The notes: a model not told the origin generated them from the sequence alone. A stretch of 64,000 bases of DNA from Klebsormidium nitens (GCA_000708835.1 DF237016.1:181852-245851), one strand, 5' to 3'. Counted from the stretch's first letter, positions 19,447-62,920 are shown. Translations and numbers: made by a program.

Positions 19447-20547
19447 CTACAACCATGGCATGTGTGCAAGCTTCCCAATAACCGCTGCCAACTCGGCACC
19501 CAGACCCAACTCCCTGAGGCAGAGGACTAGCGTAACTTGACTCTTCATCAGGTTCCGAGCAGCACCCATCTCTGCTTCAGTGAGCCGACAGCCGCCCTTG
19601 ACAAACACAATTCTCGCGCAAGCCGCGCTTATCTCTGTCCGGTCTCTAAGCCGTTTTCTGAGCCAGGCAATGCTACTAGGAAACGGACATGGCTCTGGTT
19701 CTTTACACATCCATAACACCATTGCCAACTGCCCCCCCTCTGCGGCGTGCTGCATCACATCTCCGTCCCAAGAACAGCCCTGTGTTCGCATATACCGCAT
19801 CATGTCTAAGGGGCCCTCTTCCGCCGCATGATTGCACGCCCTTCTTGTTAGCGGACAGCCCTGCGAATGTACCCACTGAAGCACTTCCAAGTTACCGCTT
19901 CGGACAGCGTTCCGACACATCAGGTCCGCGTCCCAAGAATAGCCAGCAGACCGTGCCCACTTCAGCATTCTCAGATCCCCTCCGGCTGCTGCCATCTCGC
20001 ACAAGAACTCCCTTTGCCGCGCGCCGGCATTGTGCGCCCATTGAAGCACTGCCAGCTGGCCCGACATCGCCGCATGATCCAGAAGTGTGTTATCAAAAGG
20101 GCACTTGTGAACCAACGCCCACTGTAAGACCCCAAAGTGACGTTTCCAAAACGCCGCAGAGCAAACCTCAGCGTTCCAGGGACACCCTTCGGAGCGCGCC
20201 CACTGTAGGATTGCCAAGTGCCCCTTCTTGGCCGCTTCGATGCACACGTCAGCATCCCACGGGCAGCCTTGCGCGCGCGCCCATCGCAACACGGCAAGGG
20301 AGCCCTTTTGAGCTGCCGCCGCACATATTGTTCCGCGCTGCAAAGAGTACACCCACTTCAAGAACTGCGGCTGACCGCCGACCGCCGCAGAGTGGAAGAT
20401 CCCAGTGCTCCAGGGAAGCTGGCTAGAAGAGAAGGCCCGTTTCTTGAAGTGCTTGGATTCATGCGGACCCACAGTAAGGTTGCAGATATTTTCCAGCCCC
20501 ACAGACTGCCCAACTTCGTCCGACTCCGCCAAGGTTGGTAAACTCAT
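19447..20547 (-). CDS. Intronless ankyrin-repeat protein of the (G)CPW-D-AA-G-L-LQW type
   Basis: Single 366-aa ORF (ATG at 20547) with about 8 tandem units such as ARAQGCPWDADVCIEAAKKGHLAILQW and ARSAGYSWDADLMCRNAVRSGNLEVLQW. Confidence 0.88.
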   Translation of the reverse strand: MSLPTLAESDEVGQSVGLENICNLTVGPHESKHFKKRAFSSSQLPWSTGIFHSAAVGGQPQFLKWVYSLQRGTICAAAAQKGSLAVLRWARAQGCPWDADVCIEAAKKGHLAILQWARSEGCPWNAEVCSAAFWKRHFGVLQWALVHKCPFDNTLLDHAAMSGQLAVLQWAHNAGARQREFLCEMAAAGGDLRMLKWARSAGYSWDADLMCRNAVRSGNLEVLQWVHSQGCPLTRRACNHAAEEGPLDMMRYMRTQGCSWDGDVMQHAAEGGQLAMVLWMCKEPEPCPFPSSIAWLRKRLRDRTEISAACARIVFVKGGCRLTEAEMGAARNLMKSQVTLVLCLRELGLGAELAAVIGKLAHMPWL

Positions 20548-21171
20548 GCTCACCGCAACGTATTGGAGATTTTGGCCGAAGCACTGCGACTGCTAAAGAA
20601 GCCACTGAATAAGAAAATGAGGAGGGGCGCCGCTCGCTGCGACAGACGTTGCTGCCTCTTCTCGGTTTCATGCTTCTACCGAATGTGCAACCGTAGCGCG
20701 TGAAATGTTGCAGCTATATCATAGTATATGACTCACGAACCCTTGATTAATTGGAAATCTGCCAGTCAGGATAGAATTACGTGGATATAAGTTGTTTAGC
20801 AGACGACGCATTTATTAGGTACCGGTATTAAAATGCGGTCCACGATGCACCGTCAGCTGAGCCTGGCCGTACTGATAAAAGACTGAGCGATCATGGCGGA
20901 CGTGGTACCGCAGCGGCCATTTTGGATAACATTCTGCCCTCGTGTCGTCACGAATTCCGTGAAGTGGTACGTACCAGCTACAGCGATCCGAATGGCGGGT
21001 ATACGGGGCACAGGCCCCGGGCTGTCTGGTCGCCGAGGCGTGGAAGTCGAGAATCACACCTTAAAACATAGTATTTAACCCGCGCAGCGACGATCATAGG
21101 CTCATAGCATGCCATGGCACCCCCGGGGCGGCATCGGCTGGCACAAAGCCGTCAGCTAATTACGTCGTATA

Positions 21172-45000: not shown

Positions 45001-48000
45001 CATTGATTGCCCAAGCGTCTCAATGTACATGCCTACAACGTGCTTACAGGCAAAGGGAAATGATCTCCCCCGGTTCCAAGAATCCCTTGAAAGGCCGCTG
45101 CGCGGCAACCCAGGCCCGTTACATCCGGTCTGTTCAGAATCGGCTAAGCATCCGCTCCAGAAAGGTGACGCACTTTGGGCGGAAGCAGGGTATCAAATGG
45201 CTGATGAAGTCGGGGTGAGCATCCTAACTTGACAACGTTTGTATCTGCTTCAGCAAAAGAGTTGGCCTCCATGCACTCGATGAGATGAGTTCTTCCCGGT
45301 ACAGTGGACTTTCACCTCAGCACCGCTGTTGCGCTCAACGACGTTCCGCACTTCGGCGCTCTCGGGAGCGTGCACGCACCACTTTTGAATCCGCATTTGG
45401 AACAGGGGTTTAGTTTCAGCCTGTGCGGAGTCCCCCACAGCGTGCACGCACCACTTTTGAATCCGCATTTGGAACAGGGGGCTAGATTCAGCGTTTGCGG
45501 AGCCCCCCACAGCACATTGTCCACTTATTGATTGGCGAGGAGTGAAAGGTGTGTGCCAACTCGGCTTTGAACATTGCATGCAGCACGAGCGGTGGGTTGC
45601 GAAAGCGGGAACGGAAATTGCGCACCAGAACTGATCAAGCCGCATCTGTTCAATTGATTGCAGAATACCGATGGCTGACGTTCAGAAGGCTGCCAAATTT
45701 GCCCAACAGATGAACAAGCACTTCAACATGTCGTACGCGGACGACACGCCGCTCACGGTGCAAGTCGCAATGGCGGGCTTTCCTGAGGAGGCCCGGGTCA
45801 GCAACTTCTCGGACGGGTATCGGATCCCCCGGTAAGTTGCTAATGGTTGGAGGATGCAGGCATTCTTTTGGGATGTTCAAGTCAAGGGCCGAGCTCTGCT
45901 TTTCTGTAGGAACAGTTCTCTCCAGTGCTCAGTCCCGTTTGCATCCAGCTCAGCCGTCCGTGCAACGAGCAAACGAGCATACGAACCCGTGGGCATACCG
46001 CTCCGGTCTCTTTTAGAAGCTGTACAATGCTACTGATCCTGAACACCTCTCTTGATTTTGCAGAGAGCACGCCAAGGTGGACGAGAAGGCTGTCCAAGAG
46101 CTCTTGAAGGATCTTTGTCCGTGGATAGACAGGGAGTACAACAAGGCCAAGAAGGTGAGTGTCGTCCCCTGCGAGCTTTCTATCCTGTCCAAGAAGGCGT
46201 TCAAAATTTGAGCGAGTTGTTCGTCATGCCAAGTCGCGATGACCCGTTTTCGTGACTCGCAATGCGGACAGTCTGGCAAGTTTGGTCTTGGTCTGGGTGG
46301 ATCTGTTGTACTTGTCACTGGTCTCGACGTGACGTCAAAGCACTTCAAAAAGCAATTATACATGTACTGTCACGAAGGCTTCTCGCTTTTTTGAATCATA
46401 GGTGGTAATTTCAACTCGTCAGGCATTGAGTCGGAAGAAGTTCTTTGTGCAAACATTGTCGTCATTGTGCTTCTCGCAGAGAAACGAAAGAGCACGCTTG
46501 AAAGCGGGGCGAGACCTTACGGAGGAGGGTGTGCTCCGGTTCCTTCAAGAGAGCAAGCGGCTCTTCTTGGAGGACGCCGCCTACATGCAGGACGAGTTCC
46601 CCGACCTGCCCATCTACGAGTTGAAGGTTTTCCAGTCACCGCACTGGGATTCGTTCAAGAAGGCCATCCTTGCAGCCGAAGCGGATCCGGAGAGCTTTCT
46701 GCCACCAAGGAAAGACCTGCCGGTGAGAAGTTGTCAGCTGCGAACTGGAGTTCATGTTTCTTTTGTCAAATACTTTCAGACATTTTTGTCTCAGGTCTTG
46801 TCATTTCGATCAGGTGACCTGCCGCAGTCACAAGGTTCGTGTTGATAAGTGAGGGCTCTGCTTGTCCGCACCTGCCGCTTTCGAACAGACTACATGCTGA
46901 CGTCACCCGCAGGTCAGCAGTAGACTGTCGTCAAAGGTGAGATCAGTGACATTTGATGTCACCAGCAAGAGCAATGAGCTAGTGACGAGGAACACACAAT
47001 GCTTGTACTTCAGCTGCAAGAGCGATTCTGTCATTTCAGCGTGCCTTTAGTTATTGTGAGCACGCACTGAGTAACCCGTAAAGCAGGTACATAACTCTCT
47101 GCCGGTCTGCTTGCAAGTATCTGAAGAATCTAAGAAAGTGTATTCTTGATTGCAGTCGCGCATCCTCGAGGTGGTCAGCATCCTGAGCAACGAGTTAGCT
47201 GCTGTGAAGGAGGCAGTCCACAATGTGGGCGGTCAAGTGCAGCGCGGGGCTGCAGGGTCGGCCTACAGGTTGTCGGCGTTCGTCAGCTGATCGAGGGAGG
47301 ATTAGCGACGCGAACAGAACCTGTTCCGACGGTTGACGCCAACGTGGAGAGCGCGACGCTCGGGGTGGAAGGAACCTTGAGAGCAGAGAACGAGCGTCTG
47401 CAACGAGAGGCGCGACTACATCGGGCAGAGATGGCCTACCTCAAGGCGTTCTACGCCGGCGCCGGGGAGACTGCTTCAACGGATCGAGGGGGCGAAACAG
47501 GTGACGTCAGAGGGGGCGTCGGAGAGGGCGGCGTTGGAGAGGGCGGCACGAACGAGGGGGAAGCGGCAGCGCGCGTTTTTGGTCAGGGGGTTGCGGCGCG
47601 CGCGAGGGCGCAACAGATGGCAGCCGGTGTGAGGCCGGAAGTCCAAGGTGGGAGGTTCAGGTTCGCACGAAGTGGAGGGTTTGGTGGGGAGGCTCGATCG
47701 GAGGGACGGAACGGGGGCGGTAAACGGCCTGAGGAAGTGAACCGAGCGGGAGAACCATCCACTTCGGGGCGGGGAGAAGTTGAAAGAGGAGCACGGACAG
47801 GGCAGCGTCGGCCGGAGAACAGAACGGAGGAAAGCGGTAGACAGCGGGCTGAAGCAACGGAGCCGGTCACTGATGGCGAAGGCGAAAGAAACGAAGAGGA
47901 TCCAGGCCGAATTTATCGAGAAGGGGGCTATCCGTGGCCCCAGGTGAGCACGGTGGAAGACGTCTGGACGGAGTGGAGCTTTGGGCTTGAGAACCATCCG

Positions 48001-48282
48001 TCTATAACACAGTTGGAGGAAGAGAAGAAATTGTTTCCAGGAACGAACTGGAGAAAGGGGCCAGTCCATAGGAAAAGGTATTTTGAGAGGAAAGAGGTCA
48101 TCGAGTTTGTGTTGAGGTTTCAAACAGAAAAGCAGTTGACTAGTACAGCTACGGCGGTGGAGGTGTTAGGAAGCAGGTACTCTAGTCATCGGAAGCTTCT
48201 AAACGAAATTGCACGATTGAAAAGAATCGAAAGAGTTGAACGACAAGCTGCTCGGGAGGAAGCAGAAGGTGATGATGACTAG
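42020..48282 (+). mobile_element. Crypton-like (CryptonF-type) spliced tyrosine-recombinase gene with NDC10_II-like and C-terminal GCR1_C-like domains; probably inactive
   Basis: Spliced translation shows LFSCIIRSKTTREMQWSD (Arg at 44258), NGRIEIHSVLRHKNP, RKVTHFGRKQG (HxxR at 45171-45182), MNKHFNMSYADDTP..VAMAGFP (Tyr at 45734), LKDLCPWID, FLEDAAYMQDEFPDLPIYELKVFQSPHWDSF and STVEDVWTEWSFGLENHPSITQLE...WRKG...RKRYFERKEVI. In-frame stops at 42170-42172 and 43386-43388. Element ends not determined. Confidence 0.85.
45367..45512. repeat. 72-bp tandem duplication inside a Crypton intron
   Basis: Identical 42-bp core AGCGTGCACGCACCACTTTTGAATCCGCATTTGGAACAGGGG at 45367 and 45439. Confidence 0.9.
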
Positions 48283-51744: not shown

Positions 51745-54700
51745 TCAGTTCAGCTGCACCACCATGCCGTACGCGTTGAAATAGGCGAGGAACTCGTCGA
51801 ATTCCACGTCGCCGCTGCCGTCCGAGTCCATGACTTCGAACAGTTTGCGCACCACAAATTCGTTGATGTGCGTGCTCCCAGTGGTCCGCTTCTGCAGGTC
51901 TCGCACCAGGTCCGTCATTTCGAGCAGCGTCAGGCTGTTGCTCTTGTCGGTGTCGTAGCGCGCCCACATCTTCTCCAACTGCACGCGAGGGATTGACGGA
52001 GGTTTTCAGCGGGCAAATCGTGGATGGTTAACCACGGGCAATCTTTTGTAACTTCGCGCGCGAGATTGGCGGGCGTTCTCGGCCGTGAACGGTTATAGGC
52101 TCATCGAGAAGAAGTGACGTGAACAACAACCAAGGTTGGGCGGTAACCAGCCTTAGAGGAAGCTTATGCAACGGTTATGTGGCCAATAACCTTAAATTTG
52201 AGACTGAAAATCGGCCTCGAAGTGCAGCGTCAGGCTGTTGCTCTTAACGGTGTCGTAGCGCGCCCACATCTTCTCCAACTGCGCGCGCGAAAGTGGCGGG
52301 AGGTTTTAGCCGTGAAAGGTTAAACGATGACTAAGAAGGTGAAGTGAACGAAAAATAGACTTTGGGCGGTTAACGGTCTTAGAGCAAGGTTGGGTAACGG
52401 TTATGTTTTCAATAAACCTGAAACTCAAGTCTCAGAATGGGTTCCTGTTATTGGCAGGGGAGAGTGCAAGACGTAAATCGACAGGAAGATGAGAGACGGA
52501 CAACCGGCAGGGCCAACGCAACCCGAATTGAGCCTCTTTCACGAGGAATTCACAATGATGATTTGATTTTACGTACGTTGAGTTAGGCTCCTAGGTTGAG
52601 TAGAATCGGTTGCCCGGCAATATCAGTGAAACAAGAAACCTGGACTTAAAGCAAACGTGCTCCTATCCCTAGACACTCAAACACCTGCCCGAACCAATCC
52701 CGCGTCTCACGGTCATGGCCGATCAGTAGCTTAAGTCAACTTAATCGTTACACACGGATTGTTGGAAAATAACCTATTGTGCGGTGACGAGCTGTTCAGA
52801 CGCTGGGTATATATGCGTTCCATAAGCAAAGTTGGGTGGTAACCTGGAATGCACCAATGTTAGAGCCCATCTATTTGTCCATCACCAAAACTGTTTAGAA
52901 ACTGTCAGCCTGTTTAGCAGCAAGCCCTCCTATGTTGACATCAGTCAAGTCCGAACCGGTACCCAAACCCACCTCCTCGCGGTCCATCTTCTCCTCCTGG
53001 TGCGCCTCGATGAGCATCTCCTTCGAGAAGCGTGACACGAGGAACCGTTGCGTCAGCGTCGGCACGATGAAGAAGAAGAGCGACAGCCAGAACTTGGCGT
53101 AGTCCGTGTGCGAGCCTCCATCGGCGCTGGCCTGCTGTGCGTCGCTAGCTTGTGCCAGCGCTGCAACGTCAGAAAAAAGGAGCGGTTAAAATTGTTTTCT
53201 AAAGTAGGTACGATAAGCTTAGGTTAAGGTACTGTGAAGGATAGCGTTAGTATTGGGGTTAGGGTGGGTACTGGTGCGGAGCGGGTGATCGTTTGGGTTT
53301 AGGCTTTTAGTGTTAGCTTCGTATTTCTTGAATCTTCTATTGGTAAGCAGTTTCTCAGGTGAATCAAAGTTAATAGGAATATGCCGGCGCGCAGCCTTTG
53401 AAGGATCCATTTCAGCGAAGTTGAAGTTCCGAGATCTCACCCGCCCACAAAAAAATGTTCGGAGTTGCCAGCACGATGTACAGGTCCAGGTTATGACCCG
53501 GGGTTAGCAGGTTCCCCCGGAAGAACTTCTGCCACGTGGCAGCCAGCAGCGCCCCCAGCAGCTGCATGCCGACCACCTGGGCTAGCGCCAGCCAGAACTG
53601 TTGAAAGCACCTCTGCACGCGCGCGCACGTTGAAATGGGGCTATTAACCTGACCGGGTTGATGCCTGGTTAAGTGTGGTCCTGCGGCTAAGGGATCATGT
53701 GCGAGAATGATTGAGTTATATTGTTCAGTGTGCGACTGCAAGTCGACTCGACGAAGGTGAAAGTGACAAGATTTCTGGAGGAGGGGTTAGGCAAAGCGAA
53801 GATTAGGACCGGATTCTCGATCTCGAAGCAGGTTGAAGCTTGGATCCGTCGGCGGAGATTGGAGCCAGTTGTGACGATATTTCAAAGATTAAGAGGCCTT
53901 GAACGGGCAAGAGGGCGAGTAGAAGCATGAAACGCAAGTGCCTTCTACTGAAGCATTTTTCTTCGAGACCAAACCGCAAAATGGGCAGAAAGAGCGCTGT
54001 TGATAGGTACTAAACAGCCTCCAAAGAACGCTGACGGCCGGACAATTCGACGTCTCGGTAGTTACCTGAATAATGAAAACCTCTGCTGTGCTGTACGTGT
54101 GGTTGAACACGAGGTGGATGAGCGACTCGGGTGTAAACTGGTACCCGGAGAAGAGCCCCAGGCACATGAAGGCAACCGTACCGAGCCACTGCCACTTCTT
54201 GGCGTGCTTCTTGCAATCCACCGGGGAGCGCCTGGAGAATTGGAACGACACGTAAGCGGCAGTCCATTGTTGGAAGCTCATGGGGGGACGATCGTGAGCA
54301 GACTCAATAAGTGTTCGATCCTATTTCGGCATGGGCGTGTCTGCGAGTGGGGTGTTCCGCTGGTCAATACGATCCTGATGCAACTGCAATATTTTCAACT
54401 TGACCATTCTGAGTGCGCTGTTAAGAATCGAAACTTGCGAGGATGTTGCTATGACTCGATCCTCTTCCTTTTCCGAAAATCACATACCAGTTCCAACTCT
54501 TTCTTCGTATTGTTTATTCAAGAGCTTTTTGTTTAGTGTGCATATCGTGCGTTCAAAGGATCCATCGGAATCGACCCAACTGCGCTTTGATCGAGCCCCT
54601 TTTTCAATGGGTTGATCATACGGAAGTGTATCTGTCCTCAGAGTTCGGGTGTTAACCTTGGTTATGAGCTGGCAATGCGCTGGTCATGGGCTGCTTAGAA

Positions 54701-57700
54701 AGTTGTTACGTGTTCAGTAACCAGACTAGAACAACTACCAGATAACCAGCCTTGGAATAAGCTTAACACCCAATTACTTGTTCACCGACTTTAAGACTTC
54801 ACTCTCAATTGTCAGCCTGGTTTTGTAGCAGCGAGAACTTGATTCCTGTGCTCGACCCACCTGCGCCAGATCTGAGCGATGGCGCCTGGAACGGCGAGCC
54901 CGACGGCAAGAAGGATGTAGAAGAACTGGGCTGGTTAGAAAGTGGTCAAATAACCAACAACCAGACTAGCGTCCCTGCCTTGGAAGAAGGCTAAAGCGGG
55001 GTTATTGATTCACTAAGTTTAAGCTTCACTCCGAGTCCCAGCCTGGTTAGCAGCCAAAACGTTTTGGTTAGAGTAAACCCACCTGCGCCAGATCTGGGCG
55101 ATGGCCCCGGGCACGCCGAGCCCGACGGCAAGAAGTATGTAAAAGAACGTCATGTCCTCCGGCTTAAACACCGTTACGTCCGTGGCTGAGAGGATGATCA
55201 GGAGAAGCGGCTGCAACAGGCTGGCAATCAGAGACACTACCTGTGGAAGAGATGACACTCATTGTGTAAGAATATCGCTGTGAAAGACCTGGAAAATTTA
55301 TCAAGGCACCATCTAAGTTCTAGAAATCGTTCGACAGAGTAGTGTTCGGAAAGGCAAATCGAACATAATTTTACATTCCGTGATCGTCTGTCGAATCGAA
55401 GCTAACTTTTGGGCTCCATCCGATTCTTTCCGATTCCCGGGGGTCTTGAAGTGCACTTGAATCCTACTGGCGGCGTATCGGCCGCGAAGAAGTATCCGTC
55501 CGCTTTAATTACATCAAAAAGTAGCTGTTGTCGCTCACAAACCGCACTCTCCAGCGTGACAGCTCTACTGAACGGGCGAGAGATTTCACTCTCCGAAATC
55601 GGCACCAATCAAATCCATCGACTCAAACCCTACAGTCAAAGAGACTTCATAAGCGTAGCCACTTCCGAAAGGGAGCGAAGAGAAAAATTAAGCATTGACA
55701 GTCCGCTGCGTTTGAAGCGCTTGTAGATCAGAGCCGCCTGGGGCCAGGTTCCTGGGAAAAGGGGCAGGCGATCGCTTACCACTGAGAGGTATAGTCCGCC
55801 CCCCCACAGCAGTGACACAGTTGCGCACGTCAGCGCAGGTGGCACGAGCCAATACAACGCGAACAGCTGTCCCGCCACGTCACGCTTGAATGGCGTTAGC
55901 AACAGCGGCACCATCACGATGACGCGAGCAACGAACTGGGCGAAGTAGATGAAAGCCGCGCTCAGAGGCGCGCGCGCGAACGAGATCGGGAGGTCGATTT
56001 CCAGGTAGGAGTAGAGCGTCGAGAAGAATAGTGCGACGGTAAGAAAAGTCTGCAAGGGCCAGGAAATGTGGTTTGAGTTTTCGAATCTGAGCGGAGCAGA
56101 CGAGCCCGCCTGAATGCGGCCATGACGTGGCTGTCGATAGACGCACCAGACTGTGTTGAATTCACAAGGTTGCCAAGAGTCAAGTTGCATTAGTCATGCA
56201 GAGAAGAAGCCAAGGCATGGGTACGTACAAGAAAAGGTTGGAGCCAGACAAGAACAAAGGACAAGACTCTCAAAATCTTGCTAAATTCCGACGGAACAAA
56301 ATCAAGCTCGTCGGCCGTGCTGCCATTTGATGTGATTCCCGAAACAGGCTGAAGCTGCCGCGGATTTCTCGTTTAACCGTATCGGATAAGAAAACTGCTT
56401 CAAAATAGTGACGGGCCTTCTGCGAGTGCCCACCAACCAGGAACGTCGTTGCAGGGTGGATTGGGATCAGAGTTCTATGGACGTTCAAGAAAACGAAAGC
56501 AGCCTCGAGCAATATTCATTGTCACCAGGCGCGGCGCTTCCGCACGCTGCAAGAGCTTGGTTCTACTTCACAGGAAGGGTTTCGATCCTAGTCAGATTGA
56601 AATCAACGTACTCAGCCAGCTTTTCACCAGCTTCATCCGGTGGGATTAGTAAGACCGAAGACTAAGCAGGCTTGGTCAACGGTACTTTGTTATCATGAGG
56701 TTCTTCTCAGTCTCGACTGCCCCCACCTGAAAGAGCGGCTTCGGCATGGCGTCGGTAAAGTACCAGCGGAGGAGCAGACCGACGATGAACAGAAGCGGCG
56801 ACAAATTGAGCCCGTGCAGGGCCACCATGTCGCCCAGCTTCTGGATGAACTTCCCGAAGCCGCCCGTCTCCATGTTCTTGTACTTGACCAGATCGGAGCG
56901 GCTGAGGGCCTTTCCGTTAGGCAGACTGCACGAGAGAGCGCAAGTTACAAGAAACACTTTGGGCATCAGATACGGATGATTATGGTCTGGCTTACAAAGT
57001 GGTTCAGTTAGTGTCGAATAACCAGACTCGGGCGGCGACCAACTTTGGAACCTGAAGGTAAAAGCCCAGTTTTCTGGTCAGATAACCCGATACGCAAGTT
57101 TGGTGATCAGCCTGGTTAGCAGGGAAAGTTTTTAGTACACATCAATGAGGCATTGCGCCTGCACGAAGAGATGCTGGCAAGTGCGGTAGCGTTCTTTATT
57201 CTGGAAGTGTTGAACGTAAGACGTATCTAAGGATTCCCAACTCGCAGACACAGCAAAAGACAGACCGGTTTTCTAGCTAAATGGGCTTCGGCTCAAGGGG
57301 CGGCTTTGGAGCGCGGATGATTGAACATTTGGTCGAAGATCTAGCTCTAGAGAATTTGAAAAACTCTGCTTCTCAGGTTTGAAAAAGAGCGTACTTGGAC
57401 AGGATGCGGGAACCCTGAGTAGTTTTCATCTGTCAAGTCGTCTCAGCAATCACAGAAAAGTCGGAAGCAAAACTTTTATCCAATCCATGATGAGAGTGGG
57501 GTCTTTTGCCACGAATGTTGCTGCGAGGGCGTATGAACACCAGACACGATGTCCTATGTGAAGACCAAAACCCTCCTGATTGCAACCGGTTCATCCTCAG
57601 CCTCCCCTAGAAATTCGAGGTACGTGTGTTGGACTCACTTGAAGTGAAAGAAGTCGCCCGCCGTCAGTCCGTCCAAATAGAACGCGAGCGGCTCAATTAC

Positions 57701-60013
57701 GTACTGGTGCGACACCACCAGCACCTTCTCCCCGCGCTCGACACGTGGCAGCACCTTGTCCTCCATGAAAAGGCGCGCGCGCTCATACACCTTCTTCATC
57801 GTCTCGCCCTGAGGGGGCGCCTCGTACGCTGAGTGCATAAAGTGCTCGAACGGCTCGTAGCCGAACGCCTGTATAAGGAACAAACGGTGGGTTTGTATAA
57901 CCTTCGCTCAGTGGTTCGAGATTGGTAAAGGTGAAGGAATCACGTCAATGTGGTGATGTCAACTTGACGTCAAAACGAGCTCACCCTGCAGGGTCCGGAG
58001 CATTCGAGAGTGCACGTCACTGGACGGTTGATTGTGATCAAAACCAGGTGGTTATGAACGGACTCTACATACTACCTGTTGACGGCTTTAAGACAGGATC
58101 ACTTTTGTGAGTGATTTCGAATTACGTAGCAGGACCTGGTAACTCCCGTTTCACTTAAGAGCCACTTTACTTGAGATAGTCGCCCGGGAGACTTCTCGGT
58201 ACGGTTGGCTTGGTGGTTAGGGTGGGTCCGGGTGCGCAGCGCATTATTCTGCCGGTTAGGGTTTCCAACAGTGTTCGCCCGGGTAGCTCGGATCTTAAAT
58301 GAAAAGGCTGTTAAATGGATTGGGAGTTGCCAGTATGATCATAGCGGGCCAATCTCTAAGGTGGCTGTGTTTGAACCCGGTAGCTGTGACCCTTAGGGGA
58401 CTTTAACCACAGGTTCATGAGCTGGTCGACAAGCTTCAACCATGAACTAACCAGGTCGATCTTGACTCTACTACTGAAGTTTCACACTGGATCCAGAAAC
58501 AGCGTGACAGCCGAATCAAATTGCATGAAGCCACTTGCCTGCCTCAGCAGAGCAATGCTGCGCCCGGCAAACGTCCCAAACGAGCGCTCTGCGATCCTGC
58601 CGTCCTGTTCCGGTTCCGTTCCTTTGATTCCGGCCTCCTCCAGCGCGAGCTTGCACGTTTGGCGCGCTCTGAGCATGTACGACACGTACACTTTGTCAAA
58701 GTGCGCGAGCTTCTTTGCCTTGATGTCCAGCCCCGCGCGCCGCGCCTGGTTCTGACCGAAGGGGGTGAGGGCCACGTCGAAAACGCCTGTGAGGGAGAAA
58801 GAAGGGTTGTTGGTTCGATGCGAAACAGGCTGGTACTGTTCGATTCATAGGCTTTTGTTGAAACATCTAAATAGCTGATTTCTTGAATTTTGATGACCTG
58901 GGACAAACCCATGTCCCCTAGTGCTGCCGATGGAAAACCAGTGGAGATCTGATATAATCTGAACAGCTGGACAAATCACAACGGGCACGATCAGCCCTTG
59001 CCACTTGGCCGGGCTTGGCTTTGAGGGAACGCTCAAGTGCAACCTGCTGGCGTTCCGATAAAAGTCTGCATAAGCAAGAAGATTGTGTTCGCTGTCCTAT
59101 CAGAGGGTTGCCGTCAAAACATGCCGCTGCTGTTGGGCAAGGCATAGGCGCTGTGACGAGTTATGTAGGACGCAGTTTCTTCGTAGGAGATACATACAGC
59201 TGTAACACATCCCAAGTTCCAAAAGCCAGGCCAGGGAGAAGAGGGAACAGGAGGGTTTGAACTTTCCGGCATACTATTAGGTGTCTTGTTTCACACAAGG
59301 GGTCAGCTCCCAAATCCTGAGGCGCCGTGATGAGCTGATTACCATCAGCCTTGCTCTACCCTTGTCCTTTAGCTGACTTTGGATGTTCAGGGTTGAATCC
59401 CACAAACAAATTCAGCCTCTGACGTTCGTATTCAATCTGCATAATTCGGATACAGGATGGACTAACCTTGGGACTCACAGATCTTATAATAACATCAGCA
59501 GTATTTTCTTCCATTTCAGAAAAGTGGGCTCGTGAGGGGCAACCCATCGGCTCTACTTCTTTGATGTGACCAAAGCCCTAGCTGCCTGAGGTCCTTCACC
59601 AGATCCCCTGAAGATACACCGACACACAGTTGTTGTTCCCCTTGTGTTAAACTCCACTCATACAAGTACTTTCGAACAACGAGCAATGTTGGGCTTTACT
59701 CCTCATTGCCATGTTGCTGACATACTAGGTACATAGACTTTACCCACAAAAGACACTCATGCAATAGTCTGAAGTTCTAGGAATAGCTGAGCTGGAAGAA
59801 TGCCACAGAACGTGACTAGTGCATAATGTAGCATTGAAGGCTGAATGAAATTTTGTGTGGACGATGCCTGCCGAGTTGGGTACCAAATATGTACCAAGCA
59901 GAACTGAAGCCTTAAACTTGTTGGTTACCTGCAAAGCGTCCCTGGCGATTTGACTCAGACTCCCCGTGTCTGATGAAATACACCTCTCCCTTGCCGTTCT
60001 TCCCTTCCTCCAT
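51745..60013 (-). CDS. Fusion protein: histidine phosphatase (phosphoglycerate-mutase-like) + multi-pass bile acid:Na+ symporter-like membrane domain + two C-terminal EF-hands; 10 exons
   Basis: Phase-consistent exons 60013-59929, 58786-58539 (GC donor), 57868-57639, 56925-56727, 56049-55780, 55240-55083, 54231-54066, 53612-53441, 53160-52973, 51978-51745. Motifs: VYFIRHGESESN, DVALTPFG, RARQT, IAERSFG, PPQGET, VLVVSHQ, LPNG; hydrophobic helices including PPALTCATVSLLWGGGLYLSVVVSLIASLLQPLLL and TPNIFLWAALA; EF loops DTDKSNSLTLLE and DSDGSGDVEFDE. A further 5' exon is possible. Confidence 0.85.
52222..52440. repeat. Intronic degenerate copy of the acceptor and first codons of the EF-hand exon (period about 300 bp)
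   Basis: GCAGCGTCAGGCTGTTGCTCTT..CGGTGTCGTAGCGCGCCCACATCTTCTCCAACTGC occurs in the exon (about 51925-51982) and again at about 52225-52282, with adjacent intron similarity. Confidence 0.85.
54856..54930. repeat. Intronic copy of the 3' end and donor of exon 6 of the fusion gene (period about 222 bp)
   Basis: CCCACCTGCGCCAGATCTG.GCGATGGC.CC.GG.AC.[G/C]CGAGCCCGACGGCAAGAAG at 54856 and 55078. Confidence 0.85.
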
Positions 60014-61731
60014 GAAAGCAGCATCGTGACTTATCTTGGATAGCTCTGCACATGTACAGGAAGGAAATTTTGAAACGCTTGTACAGCATTTGCAGTCGTT
60101 GGTGGATTTATGTGGATAAGGGCCAGGATTAGACATGTAGTAAACATATGACATCCACTCCAGGGTCCTAAGAAAAGGTGTTGAGCGATGGTTGAGAAGT
60201 CCACGTACTATTAGCTAGACATCCAACACCTGGATTGCAACACCGCAACAAGGAACTAGAAGATACAACCTGGCTATCAACTTTTGGAATGTGCCTAGGG
60301 AGAGAGATCCTGAATCAGGAAGCTGCATAACTGAAGTTGTATGGCTTTGATATGGCTTTGATGTGAACCAGGACCAAAGAGAAACAACATGCTAATGAAA
60401 ATGTGTGTTGACCACAGGCTAGCTTTCTGCACATGAAGACGCTCTGAACTGAAGGCTTTCACAAAAAGATGACAACTTGGCTAACTTTGAAGCTTCCCAG
60501 AGTTTTCTGACACATCTCATAGGAAACTTTGGTCAATCATGACTCGTGGGTCCAGACCGTCAACACCTTTCGTGCTTTTAAGGAGCAAGTTTTTGTTCCA
60601 TGCTCCTCAATATGAGCTGACAAAACCTTAAGAGCCAATCCTTTTCTTGGTTTCCCCCACGAGTGCCGCATTACTATTCTGGCGAATACCGTGTAGACAG
60701 ACTTGCTGGTTACCCTGGACTCTGTTGCCCAATGGTTGAGAGTCACAAAAGCCAACAACTTTTCAAAGATAAGAGACACCCCGCCTGAGTAAGAAGGCAG
60801 CAGGGTGACCTGACAGATGTCCCGTCTTGCACACAAGAGAACCCAAATGAACCCCTTGGAACATCCTGGTTCATTTTTATCATCTGCCACACCTCTTCAA
60901 GACACACCTAAAGTGGACAGCCCATAACCATAAGCAGCTTCTGATTATGGACCACGAGTCGTTTACTTTAGTTTTGCAACTTTCTCGATCTTCTTGCAGC
61001 GGGTTTGACTTCTCACCGGCTTCATTATGCAAGCTATCGTACGGCTGACCCCCTGGCATTTCCATGACGCTGCGAGCTCCTTCCGTTTTGGGGCTCTGAG
61101 AAGTCGTGACCCTGTCCCCCATGTACTTGGCCACAAACTCGACGTGAGCTCAGGACAAGGCCGAGCTTAGATAAGCTCGCAACTAAGTTCTGGTGCTTCC
61201 TTTGTGCTTCAAGAGGAGAATGCGTGGTGCTCCAAGAAGAGAATGCAATCAGATTTCTCTTTCGAGAGGACTAGAATGCTTGTTGCTTCAAGAAGAGGAT
61301 GCTTGGCGCTAAATTCAAGAAGAGAATGGGAAGTGCAAATGTACCAAATACACATGGTAGTCCGTGACGGTCCGTGACCCGTCTCTCGGAATTGCAGCCT
61401 TCAATGCTCAGCATTCATTCACCGTCCAATTTCCAAGCGTGCCCGCTGACGTGTTGTAGAATTAATTAGGGCTCACGCAGAACCTAGTTTGTACTGGTCT
61501 TGACGGATCTGATGTGTTTCAGGCTCAGCCACTCACAGTGGGTTGCCAGATCGATGGTGGAGTCGTGGAGGACAGCACATTCTGCTTTAATTCAAAAACA
61601 CTCATGATCAGAGGAATCTTACGTACGAATTCATGGGATATCCTGACTCTTGAGGTTATCCGCAGAACTGCTATTTATAGGTATGCGTGCTGATTGCGGA
61701 AACAGGGTCAAAATCTGCTTTGTCTTCGGGC

Positions 61732-61961
61732 ATGTCAGTCAGGATACCCCTGTGACAACACGAGCTATGTTACCAACCGCAAATGGTTGCTCAGACTTGC
61801 TCTGTCACTGTGTATCAACCCGGTCGTGGGATTAAATATTGTCAATGCAAATTACCGGTACCTGAATGAGCAGTCAGTCAGGACTCAGGATATTGCATGC
61901 GGAGCCTGGAGGCTCTAGAGTCTAGCCTCTAGCTCTGTTCACAGGATATCCTGACTGACAT
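61732..61961. mobile_element. Possible small TIR element
   Basis: Inverted repeats ATGTCAGTCAGGATA(CC)CCTGTG and CACAGGATATCCTGACTGACAT about 185 bp apart, with further CAGTCAGGA motifs nearby; no TSD identified. Confidence 0.5.
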
Positions 61962-61985
61962 ACCGTAACCCAGACTCCATAGGTA

Positions 61986-62920
61986 NNNNNNNNNNNNNNN
62001 NNNNNNNNNNNNNNNNNNNNNNNNNNNNNNNNNNNNNNNNNNNNNNNNNNNNNNNNNNNNNNNNNNNNNNNNNNNNNNNNNNNNNNNNNNNNNNNNNNNN
62101 NNNNNNNNNNNNNNNNNNNNNNNNNNNNNNNNNNNNNNNNNNNNNNNNNNNNNNNNNNNNNNNNNNNNNNNNNNNNNNNNNNNNNNNNNNNNNNNNNNNN
62201 NNNNNNNNNNNNNNNNNNNNNNNNNNNNNNNNNNNNNNNNNNNNNNNNNNNNNNNNNNNNNNNNNNNNNNNNNNNNNNNNNNNNNNNNNNNNNNNNNNNN
62301 NNNNNNNNNNNNNNNNNNNNNNNNNNNNNNNNNNNNNNNNNNNNNNNNNNNNNNNNNNNNNNNNNNNNNNNNNNNNNNNNNNNNNNNNNNNNNNNNNNNN
62401 NNNNNNNNNNNNNNNNNNNNNNNNNNNNNNNNNNNNNNNNNNNNNNNNNNNNNNNNNNNNNNNNNNNNNNNNNNNNNNNNNNNNNNNNNNNNNNNNNNNN
62501 NNNNNNNNNNNNNNNNNNNNNNNNNNNNNNNNNNNNNNNNNNNNNNNNNNNNNNNNNNNNNNNNNNNNNNNNNNNNNNNNNNNNNNNNNNNNNNNNNNNN
62601 NNNNNNNNNNNNNNNNNNNNNNNNNNNNNNNNNNNNNNNNNNNNNNNNNNNNNNNNNNNNNNNNNNNNNNNNNNNNNNNNNNNNNNNNNNNNNNNNNNNN
62701 NNNNNNNNNNNNNNNNNNNNNNNNNNNNNNNNNNNNNNNNNNNNNNNNNNNNNNNNNNNNNNNNNNNNNNNNNNNNNNNNNNNNNNNNNNNNNNNNNNNN
62801 NNNNNNNNNNNNNNNNNNNNNNNNNNNNNNNNNNNNNNNNNNNNNNNNNNNNNNNNNNNNNNNNNNNNNNNNNNNNNNNNNNNNNNNNNNNNNNNNNNNN
62901 NNNNNNNNNNNNNNNNNNNN
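61986..62920. other. Assembly gap
   Basis: Run of N. Confidence 1.

Follow-up and report, generated by a model that had tools for sequence, protein, structure and literature searches.

Predicted joining of a histidine phosphatase, an ASBT-fold membrane domain and an EF-hand pair in one protein family of cyanobacteria and the alga Klebsormidium nitens

A stretch of 64,000 nucleotides from the charophyte alga Klebsormidium nitens (GCA_000708835.1 DF237016.1:181852-245851), hereafter the window, carries on its minus strand, at positions 51745-60013, a set of exons whose translation appears to lead from a histidine phosphatase through a hydrophobic region to a pair of EF-hands. The question raised by this locus is whether the three parts belong to a single polypeptide and, if they do, what such a protein may be for. 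A query with the 90 amino acids (aa) encoded by one transmembrane (TM) exon retrieved the public K. nitens gene model GAQ80984.1 (UniRef A0A1Y1HQS0) with 100% identity. This protein of 676 aa, labelled in the database as dPGM (cofactor-dependent phosphoglycerate mutase), was used for full-length analyses under the name P0001, and its residue numbering is followed throughout. The comparisons described below confirm the fusion at the level of predicted sequence, with one gene encoding phosphatase, carrier and EF-hands.

One polypeptide and its relatives

The original prediction placed all three parts on one polypeptide, and this is borne out by their occurrence, in the same order, as single uninterrupted open reading frames (ORFs) in cyanobacteria. 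A protein search seeded with an alignment gave 183 clusters at 90% identity scoring E <= 0.001, and in all but five of the 120 clusters listed, Pfam matches to His_Phos_1 and to EF-hand families were found in one and the same protein. These clustered relatives are mostly 640-695 aa long and come from Microcoleus, Nostoc, Coleofasciculus, Brasilonema, Aulosira and others. When residues 235-600 of P0001 alone were used as query in a word search only the protein itself was found, and the relatives came with the alignment query. When GTDB was scanned with one genome for each species, 106 stretches encoding a relative were identified, from which 80 loci were kept; all 80 are labelled cyanobacterial, one of them as Candidatus Sericytochromatia. 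The three-part architecture was detected in 106 or more species of cyanobacteria and in no other prokaryote. According to tblastn, all three parts lie in a single frame at 74 of 84 loci, while the other 10 comprise contig ends, frameshifts, one N-terminally truncated copy, one full-length tandem pair and the eukaryotic contig L004. The flanks of the cyanobacterial loci consist of ordinary cyanobacterial genes (ClpC, SecA, DnaA, PBP). As for gene copies, Scytonema sp. HK-05 has two (L022 and L038), both frameshifted in the phosphatase domain near residue 165, and an uncultured cyanobacterium (L015) has two full-length ones in tandem, with 86% and 71% identity to the cyanobacterial protein P0006.

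The same order recurs in algae. In P0002, which clusters phylogenetically with the K. nitens protein as its nearest relative, one ORF crosses the junction between the phosphatase and the TM region, and in a second eukaryotic clade (P0003, P0133-P0142) an ORF matching His_Phos_1 is located directly upstream of the carrier, on a eukaryotic contig where Alg6/Alg8, LSM and fragmented gene calls are found as well. A further relative on a bacterial contig of low-GC style, P0147 (L086 304-1971), has phosphatase and carrier with no EF-hands (32% identity over 584 aa), so that phosphatase plus carrier form the core of the family and the EF pair is a frequent addition. This gene is adjoined by a hybrid histidine kinase and an ABC substrate-binding protein.

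Separate genes would still be conceivable from the K. nitens sequence alone, and it is the comparative evidence that leads us to conclude in favor of one protein. Since the fusion has been kept as a single gene in over 100 species of cyanobacteria, the combination is under selection. It is not a one-off: the family is widespread and already annotated, under generic names. The statement in the original prediction that no characterised protein with such an architecture was known stands as far as the literature searches reach, those by architecture and by accession having returned no description of the family; the proteins themselves were already in the databases.

The three domains

When the exons were scanned one by one against Pfam, the first three pieces matched His_Phos_1 collinearly (profile positions 1-17, 22-91 and 102-168, with E 0.005, 3e-12 and 8e-8), and P0001 as a whole reached 119.2 bits against this family (PF00300; threshold 21.7, E 2.3e-34, profile positions 1-174 of 194). 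Both the profile and the catalytic residues place the domain in branch 1 of the histidine phosphatase superfamily. The catalytic set, R42, H43, N49, R95, E122 and H192, is complete in P0001 and invariant in essentially every family member covering the domain; for R42, H43, R95, E122 and H192 this invariance extends over the 26-29 aligned relatives that cover each position. The active site initially deduced to be intact from its motifs (RHGE, the Arg of RARQT, the Glu of ERSFG and the His of VSHQ) is indeed intact.

The membrane region behaves differently in database searches. Its six exons, in the middle of the gene, gave no Pfam or NCBIfam match in exon-wise scans, and residues 235-600 of P0001 (around 360 aa) matched no NCBIfam model and no Pfam family, including SBF (PF01758) and SBF_like (PF13593). 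A lenient Pfam scan of the TM domains of 21 relatives, with E up to 10, retrieved no SBF, SBF_like or Mem_trans and only scattered DUF noise, and a family profile of the domain had no match among PDB sequences at E up to 10. The structure predicted with AlphaFold2 (AF2) for residues 235-600 from 26 aligned sequences (predicted local distance difference test, pLDDT, 82.4; predicted TM-score, pTM, 0.81) has ten TM helices, in agreement with the 9-10 hydrophobic helices counted at first, with helix 4 broken at PPALT and helix 9 broken at PN. A Foldseek comparison of this model with the PDB gave ASBT_Yf or ASBT_NM in all of the top 15 positions (E 4e-6 to 1e-4, target-normalised TM-score 0.63-0.73), followed by NTCP (TM-score 0.57-0.67) and then by Na+/H+ exchangers and SbtA. 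The best-conserved stretches of the domain are the two helix breaks and the loop between TM6 and TM7, and the membrane-embedded residues R323, D522 and N531 are conserved. The proposed resemblance to BASS/SBF transporters can thus be maintained for the fold, ASBT and NTCP being the top matches of the predicted structure, and has to be given up for the sequence family, for which no signal appeared in Pfam, NCBIfam or PDB sequences. The P-x-T... and late N-x-LA motifs on which attention had been drawn are located on the two broken helices that define the ASBT fold. Taken together, we predict with good confidence that the membrane part is a carrier domain of the ASBT/BASS fold belonging to a distinct sequence family; the model has the 10-TM fold with broken TM4 and TM9, and membership in the SBF/BASS family itself is not supported by sequence matches. 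Small organic anions are the known substrates of the ASBT/BASS fold, and the entry 8OYG is a complex with pantoate.

At the C-terminal end, the last exon matches EF-hand_7, EF-hand_1 and EF-hand_6 (E about 1e-10 to 3e-11), EF-hand_7 (PF13499) scoring 39-41.6 bits over a threshold of 30 (E 1e-9 on P0001). Both of the EF-hand loops announced for this end of the protein were found. Loop 1, DTDKSNSLTLLE, is near-canonical, with D, D, S and E present and N at position 6, and loop 2, DSDGSGDVEFDE, is canonical, with D, D, S, G and E at positions 1, 3, 5, 6 and 12, so that the pair looks like a canonical Ca2+-binding module, as predicted from its residues. With respect to topology, the N-terminus of the cyanobacterial P0006 shows no hydrophobic segment or leader, and the full-length AF2 model (pLDDT 78.5, pTM 0.70) again contains 10 TM helices. 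Given the lack of a signal peptide and the even number of helices, we infer that the phosphatase and the EF-hands both face the cytosol.

Proposed function and competing explanations

The explanation we favor, whose chances we consider evenly balanced, is that the protein is a carrier regulated by cytosolic Ca2+, with a small organic anion as substrate that the fused phosphatase either produces or uses up. The phosphatase would act at the carrier's inner mouth and hydrolyse a small phosphorylated metabolite, the likeliest class being a phospho-carboxylic acid (phosphoglycolate, phosphoglycerate, phosphoenolpyruvate or phosphoserine), since PGAM-like enzymes and BASS carriers handle such acids. 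The product, once freed of its phosphate, would be taken across the membrane by the carrier; export in this order seems preferable, the mirror alternative being import followed by release of inorganic phosphate. Binding of Ca2+ to the EF pair could switch on the carrier or the enzyme during cytosolic Ca2+ transients. Several points weigh against this proposal: the carrier has no sequence-level link to any family of known substrate, the gene neighbourhoods in cyanobacteria point to no metabolic pathway, and the substrate of the phosphatase could be a protein instead of a metabolite. Besides, no EF-hands occur in one bacterial relative, and those of one eukaryotic clade are half-degenerate, which would make control by Ca2+ an add-on and not part of the core.

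A metabolic operon was sought around the cyanobacterial fusion genes and was not found. What recurs, across Nostocales and Oscillatoriales, is a same-strand order formed by the fusion gene, an optional inserted gene, an unknown protein of 105 aa and a globin-pentapeptide protein (e.g. L031 7739-9751, L048 7371-9641, L021 7570-7884, L081 7614-9632). Where the insert is present, it codes for an MscS-like channel, a NOX5-like EF-hand NADPH oxidase, an EamA transporter or a GATase-like protein. The protein of 105 aa, which belongs to no family, is present at 29 loci under 12 taxon labels (named genera and unnamed lineages), and the counts of other neighbours in the loci are 28 for the globin-pentapeptide protein, 17 for the MscS-like channel, 10 for the NOX5-like oxidase and 9 for a dCache-HAMP cyclase. 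These neighbours are repeatedly membrane or signalling proteins, including the EF-hand NADPH oxidase and an EF-hand urea transporter, and as such we count them in favor of a Ca2+-regulated carrier. The urea transporter (UT, E 1e-61), with a C-terminal EF-hand pair, is encoded in Coleofasciculus (L003 12331-13986), two genes away from the fusion gene on its downstream side; the corresponding part of the Microcoleus locus (L001 14599-14874) has a 91-aa gene call with a UT match. Varied EF-hand fusions in cyanobacteria have been reported (PMC7016017), and no fusion with a histidine phosphatase is mentioned in the text of that article.

The same neighbourhood could be taken in another sense, in which the enzyme would be a protein or phospho-histidine phosphatase, or a sensor of a phospho-ligand, in the manner of PGAM5, Sts or SixA, while the cargo of the carrier, ion or metabolite, would be unrelated to it; under Ca2+ control, the enzyme would tune the carrier or a signalling partner. 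Signalling and ion-handling neighbours (MscS-like channel, dCache-HAMP cyclase, NOX5-like oxidase and globin-pentapeptide protein, together with the hybrid histidine kinase next to P0147) are consistent with such a role, and so are the loss of the residues that bind phosphoglycerate in dPGM, detailed below, and the ion carriers SLC9C1, SOS1 and SbtA that come after ASBT and NTCP among the structural neighbours. However, the domain is far nearer to dPGM and small-molecule phosphatases, its best PDB sequence matches being S. pombe dPGM (E 4.5e-24), PspA (7e-13) and PhoE (8e-11), than to SixA, whose model gives only 24.6-32.4 bits vs a cut-off of 74.5. A strict 1:1 covalent fusion, maintained over about 30% identity, is moreover more typical of substrate hand-over, and we regard a purely regulatory phosphatase as doubtful.

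The membrane domain could also be devoid of transport activity, its ten TM helices serving to tether a Ca2+-regulated phosphatase or to sense a ligand. This would agree with the lack of sequence similarity to active carrier families, and the assignment to a carrier fold is in itself a prediction, but conservation is highest in polar and helix-breaking residues of the crossing helices and in R323, D522 and N531. Such a conserved crossing-helix core corresponds to the working core of the fold, which is more than a passive anchor needs, so that an anchor or transceptor appears quite unlikely.

The database name, which would make of P0001 a membrane-tethered cofactor-dependent phosphoglycerate mutase, derives from the broad model TIGR01258 (pgm_1, subfamily level), passed with 89 bits vs a cut-off of 81.7, and is in keeping with a genuine dPGM being the best PDB sequence match. 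Nevertheless, all the NCBIfam equivalog models for dPGM remain far below their cut-offs (70-102 bits vs values above 300; for NF002339, 95.5-101.9 vs 316). In an alignment with yeast dPGM (1QHF), the positions of K97, R113, R114 and N183, which we take to be the ligands of phosphoglycerate (distal phosphate and carboxylate), read I, M, H and Y in P0001, and the H-G-N after the second His is replaced by H-Q-Y family-wide. In addition, the C-terminal tail of dPGM, needed for mutase activity, is missing, and the phosphatase domain runs straight into TM1 in its place. A true dPGM is very improbable in view of these data. With the residues that hold phosphoglycerate replaced and the tail missing, the N-terminal domain is probably a phosphatase acting on a different substrate and not a mutase, and the mutation of its substrate contemplated in the original prediction is unlikely.

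Starting from the preferred Ca2+-regulated, phosphatase-coupled carrier, a broader proposal can be put forward tentatively, as a possibility of low probability: a new class of enzyme-coupled secondary carrier based on vectorial dephosphorylation, that is, group translocation run backwards, gated by Ca2+, combined with a Ca2+/redox module and an ancient algal origin. The fused phosphatase would strip a metabolite of the cytosol of its phosphate and hand the product directly to the ASBT-fold carrier for release. In filamentous cyanobacteria the protein might take part in a Ca2+/redox stress module with the NOX5-like oxidase, the MscS-like channel, the globin-pentapeptide protein and the 105-aa protein, and algae such as Klebsormidium would have anciently inherited or acquired the fusion.

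The phylogeny of the family was approached with a quick maximum-likelihood tree of 49 rows with SH-aLRT support, in which the eukaryotic rows and P0147 form long branches, as warned by the tool. Cyanobacteria form one clade (support 99), inside which the branching agrees broadly with taxonomy. Outside it, on long branches, come K. nitens, P0002, P0007 and the second eukaryotic clade. Identity between the alga protein and its cyanobacterial relatives is ~40% for the whole protein and 31-34% for the membrane-plus-EF part. A recent transfer from a soil or crust cyanobacterium was considered and rejected on the basis of this low identity and of the position of the alga, on a long branch outside the supported cyanobacterial clade. 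As far as these sequences can tell, an old acquisition or inheritance fits the K. nitens gene.

Besides its possible function, the locus reveals a conserved family, in cyanobacteria and at least two eukaryotic lineages, whose membrane domain is missing from Pfam and NCBIfam and whose members are now mislabelled as phosphoglycerate mutase or generic histidine phosphatase. Little is known of the effectors of Ca2+ in cyanobacteria. If the proposed function were true, the fusion would provide for these organisms a compact example, open to direct testing, of metabolite flux under the control of Ca2+ signals, as well as one of substrate hand-over between an enzyme and an ASBT-fold carrier. The intron-free cyanobacterial orthologues make the family experimentally accessible.

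Gene structure, other features of the window and comparable systems

Ten stop-free, in-frame pieces were found on the minus strand, with junction phases read from their flanks (1, 0, 2, 0, 0, 2, 0, 1, 0) that are all compatible. Acceptors are all AG and donors are GT in all introns but one, the single GC donor (CAG/gcaagt) being located at 58533-58538 of the window, minus strand, just below the exon at 58539-58786. P0001 maps exactly onto the window as 11 coding exons. The ten exons originally proposed to join in frame are therefore correct with regard to their phases, and the public model adds a 5' exon and shifts one acceptor. The differences consist of an extra exon of 16 aa at 61018-61065, an extension of the RHG exon upstream to 60046, and the use of the later acceptor at 54231 (...IWRR/RSPVD), with an earlier in-phase acceptor at ~54276 left unused; the 54231 junction is backed by every homologue (WR.(K/R)SPVE...). 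The protein is taken here to have about 660-676 aa; if started at the ATG of the original prediction it would have about 650, as compared with the 676 of the public model. Since the N-terminal stretch is unconserved and residues 1-33 of P0001 have a pLDDT below 50 in AF2, either start codon is possible.

All exons are on the minus strand. The 5' coding exon (61018-61065), unconserved, holds the start ATG of the public model and corresponds by exact mapping to residues 1-16. The phosphatase is encoded by the exon at 59929-60046, which includes the originally proposed ATG (60013) and the RHGES catalytic motif (His_Phos_1 profile positions 1-17) and ends in phase 1; by that at 58539-58786 (Pfam E 3e-12), which supplies a second Arg (LRARQT) to the catalytic set as well as its Glu (ERSFG), and after which comes the GC-AG intron; and by that at 57639-57868, with the second catalytic His (VSHQY; Pfam E 8e-8), which ends in phase 2 and leads to an immediate stop if unspliced. 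The last strand of the phosphatase (LPNGKAL, conserved in all lineages) shares the exon at 56727-56925 with the linker and TM1. According to conservation and the AF2 model, the exon at 55780-56049 encodes TM2 and TM3 followed by TM4, a broken helix with the sequence PPALT...SLLWGGGLY, where conservation in the family is highest. Mapping of P0001 assigns TM5 and TM6 to 55083-55240, an exon ending in phase 2; mapping and homologues assign the conserved RSPV(D/E)..KH.K.W loop and TM7 to 54066-54231, with the acceptor of the public model. TM8 and the broken helix TM9 (D.YI....PNIFLWA) lie at 53441-53612, as seen by mapping and in the AF2 model, and TM10, with a long cytosolic helix that leads into the EF-hands in the full-length model, maps to 52973-53160. 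The exon at 51745-51978 contains the EF-hand pair (EF-hand_7, 41.6 bits vs a cut-off of 30) and the stop codon (51745-51747).

Two pseudo-exons, also on the minus strand and unused in the public model, were detected. One, at 54855-54926, reproduces with 90% identity the 3' half of the TM5-TM6 exon and is located in the intron that follows that exon; the other, at 52224-52317 in the last intron, reproduces with 84% identity the 5' part of the EF-hand exon plus its acceptor, has a damaged loop 1 (D to V) and runs into a stop. Both are small tandem duplications within introns, each copying part of a coding exon and the adjoining intron, as indicated by the matching intron copies 54687-54729/54927-54969 (90%) and 52136-52196/52362-52422 (84%).

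That the K. nitens gene model has been mis-joined, with the exons of phosphatase, carrier and EF-hands transcribed separately, is hardly credible: retention of the intron would give a stop right after the last (third) exon of the phosphatase, and the exon that follows is preceded by an in-frame ATG, but every junction phase fits, the order of the parts is identical in single ORFs from over 100 cyanobacteria and a single ORF of P0002 spans the phosphatase-TM junction.

Elsewhere in the window, an intronless ORF of 378 aa at 47146-48282, plus strand, is rich in Gly and Glu in its middle, contains a GCR1_C DNA-binding domain (E 8e-13) and could be a mobile-element or transcription-factor gene. 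On the minus strand, a long ORF at 19450-20553 contains ankyrin repeats (Ank_4, E 7e-12). An assembly gap, visible as a run of N, extends over ~61950-62920 and is probably the cause of the apparently low GC content (0.29) in the final bin of 2 kb. Neither the Rfam nor the tRNA scan of the window gave a match.

The features of the family can be compared with those of known systems. Like ASBT_NM (3ZUX/3ZUY/8OYF), ASBT_Yf (4N7W/7CYG), NTCP and plant BASS proteins, the membrane domain is predicted to have 10 TM helices in two inverted halves, and its broken crossing helices TM4 and TM9 are likewise predicted from the model. Its model matches ASBT with target-normalised TM-scores of 0.64-0.73 (E 4e-6 to 3e-5). 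It differs from these proteins in showing no detectable sequence similarity (12-18% identity in structural alignment), in its own motifs, PPALT.P..S.LWGG.LY and D.YIL...PN.FLW, and in the two soluble domains fused to it. The phosphatase shares His_Phos_1 and the full catalytic set with S. pombe dPGM (1FZT), PspA (4IJ5), PhoE (1H2E) and CobC, and with S. pombe dPGM (211 aa) also the short form without the long loop, whereas the replaced mutase substrate positions, the missing tail, the H-Q-Y instead of H-G-N and the fusion to a membrane domain set it apart. NOX5, including its cyanobacterial forms, SCaMC and Aralar offer an analogy for a cytosolic EF-hand module covalently joined to a membrane enzyme or carrier, although the EF pair is here C-terminal, single, and placed on a predicted ASBT-fold carrier that also bears an enzyme. 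Another precedent is the fusion of the ACR3 arsenite pump with the ArsC reductase, in which a carrier of the bile/arsenite/riboflavin fold class is joined to the enzyme supplying its substrate. The family described here differs in enzyme class, in motifs and in substrate and has no ACR3 signature, but by analogy the ACR3-ArsC fusion may represent a precedent for the logic of a hand-over from enzyme to carrier.

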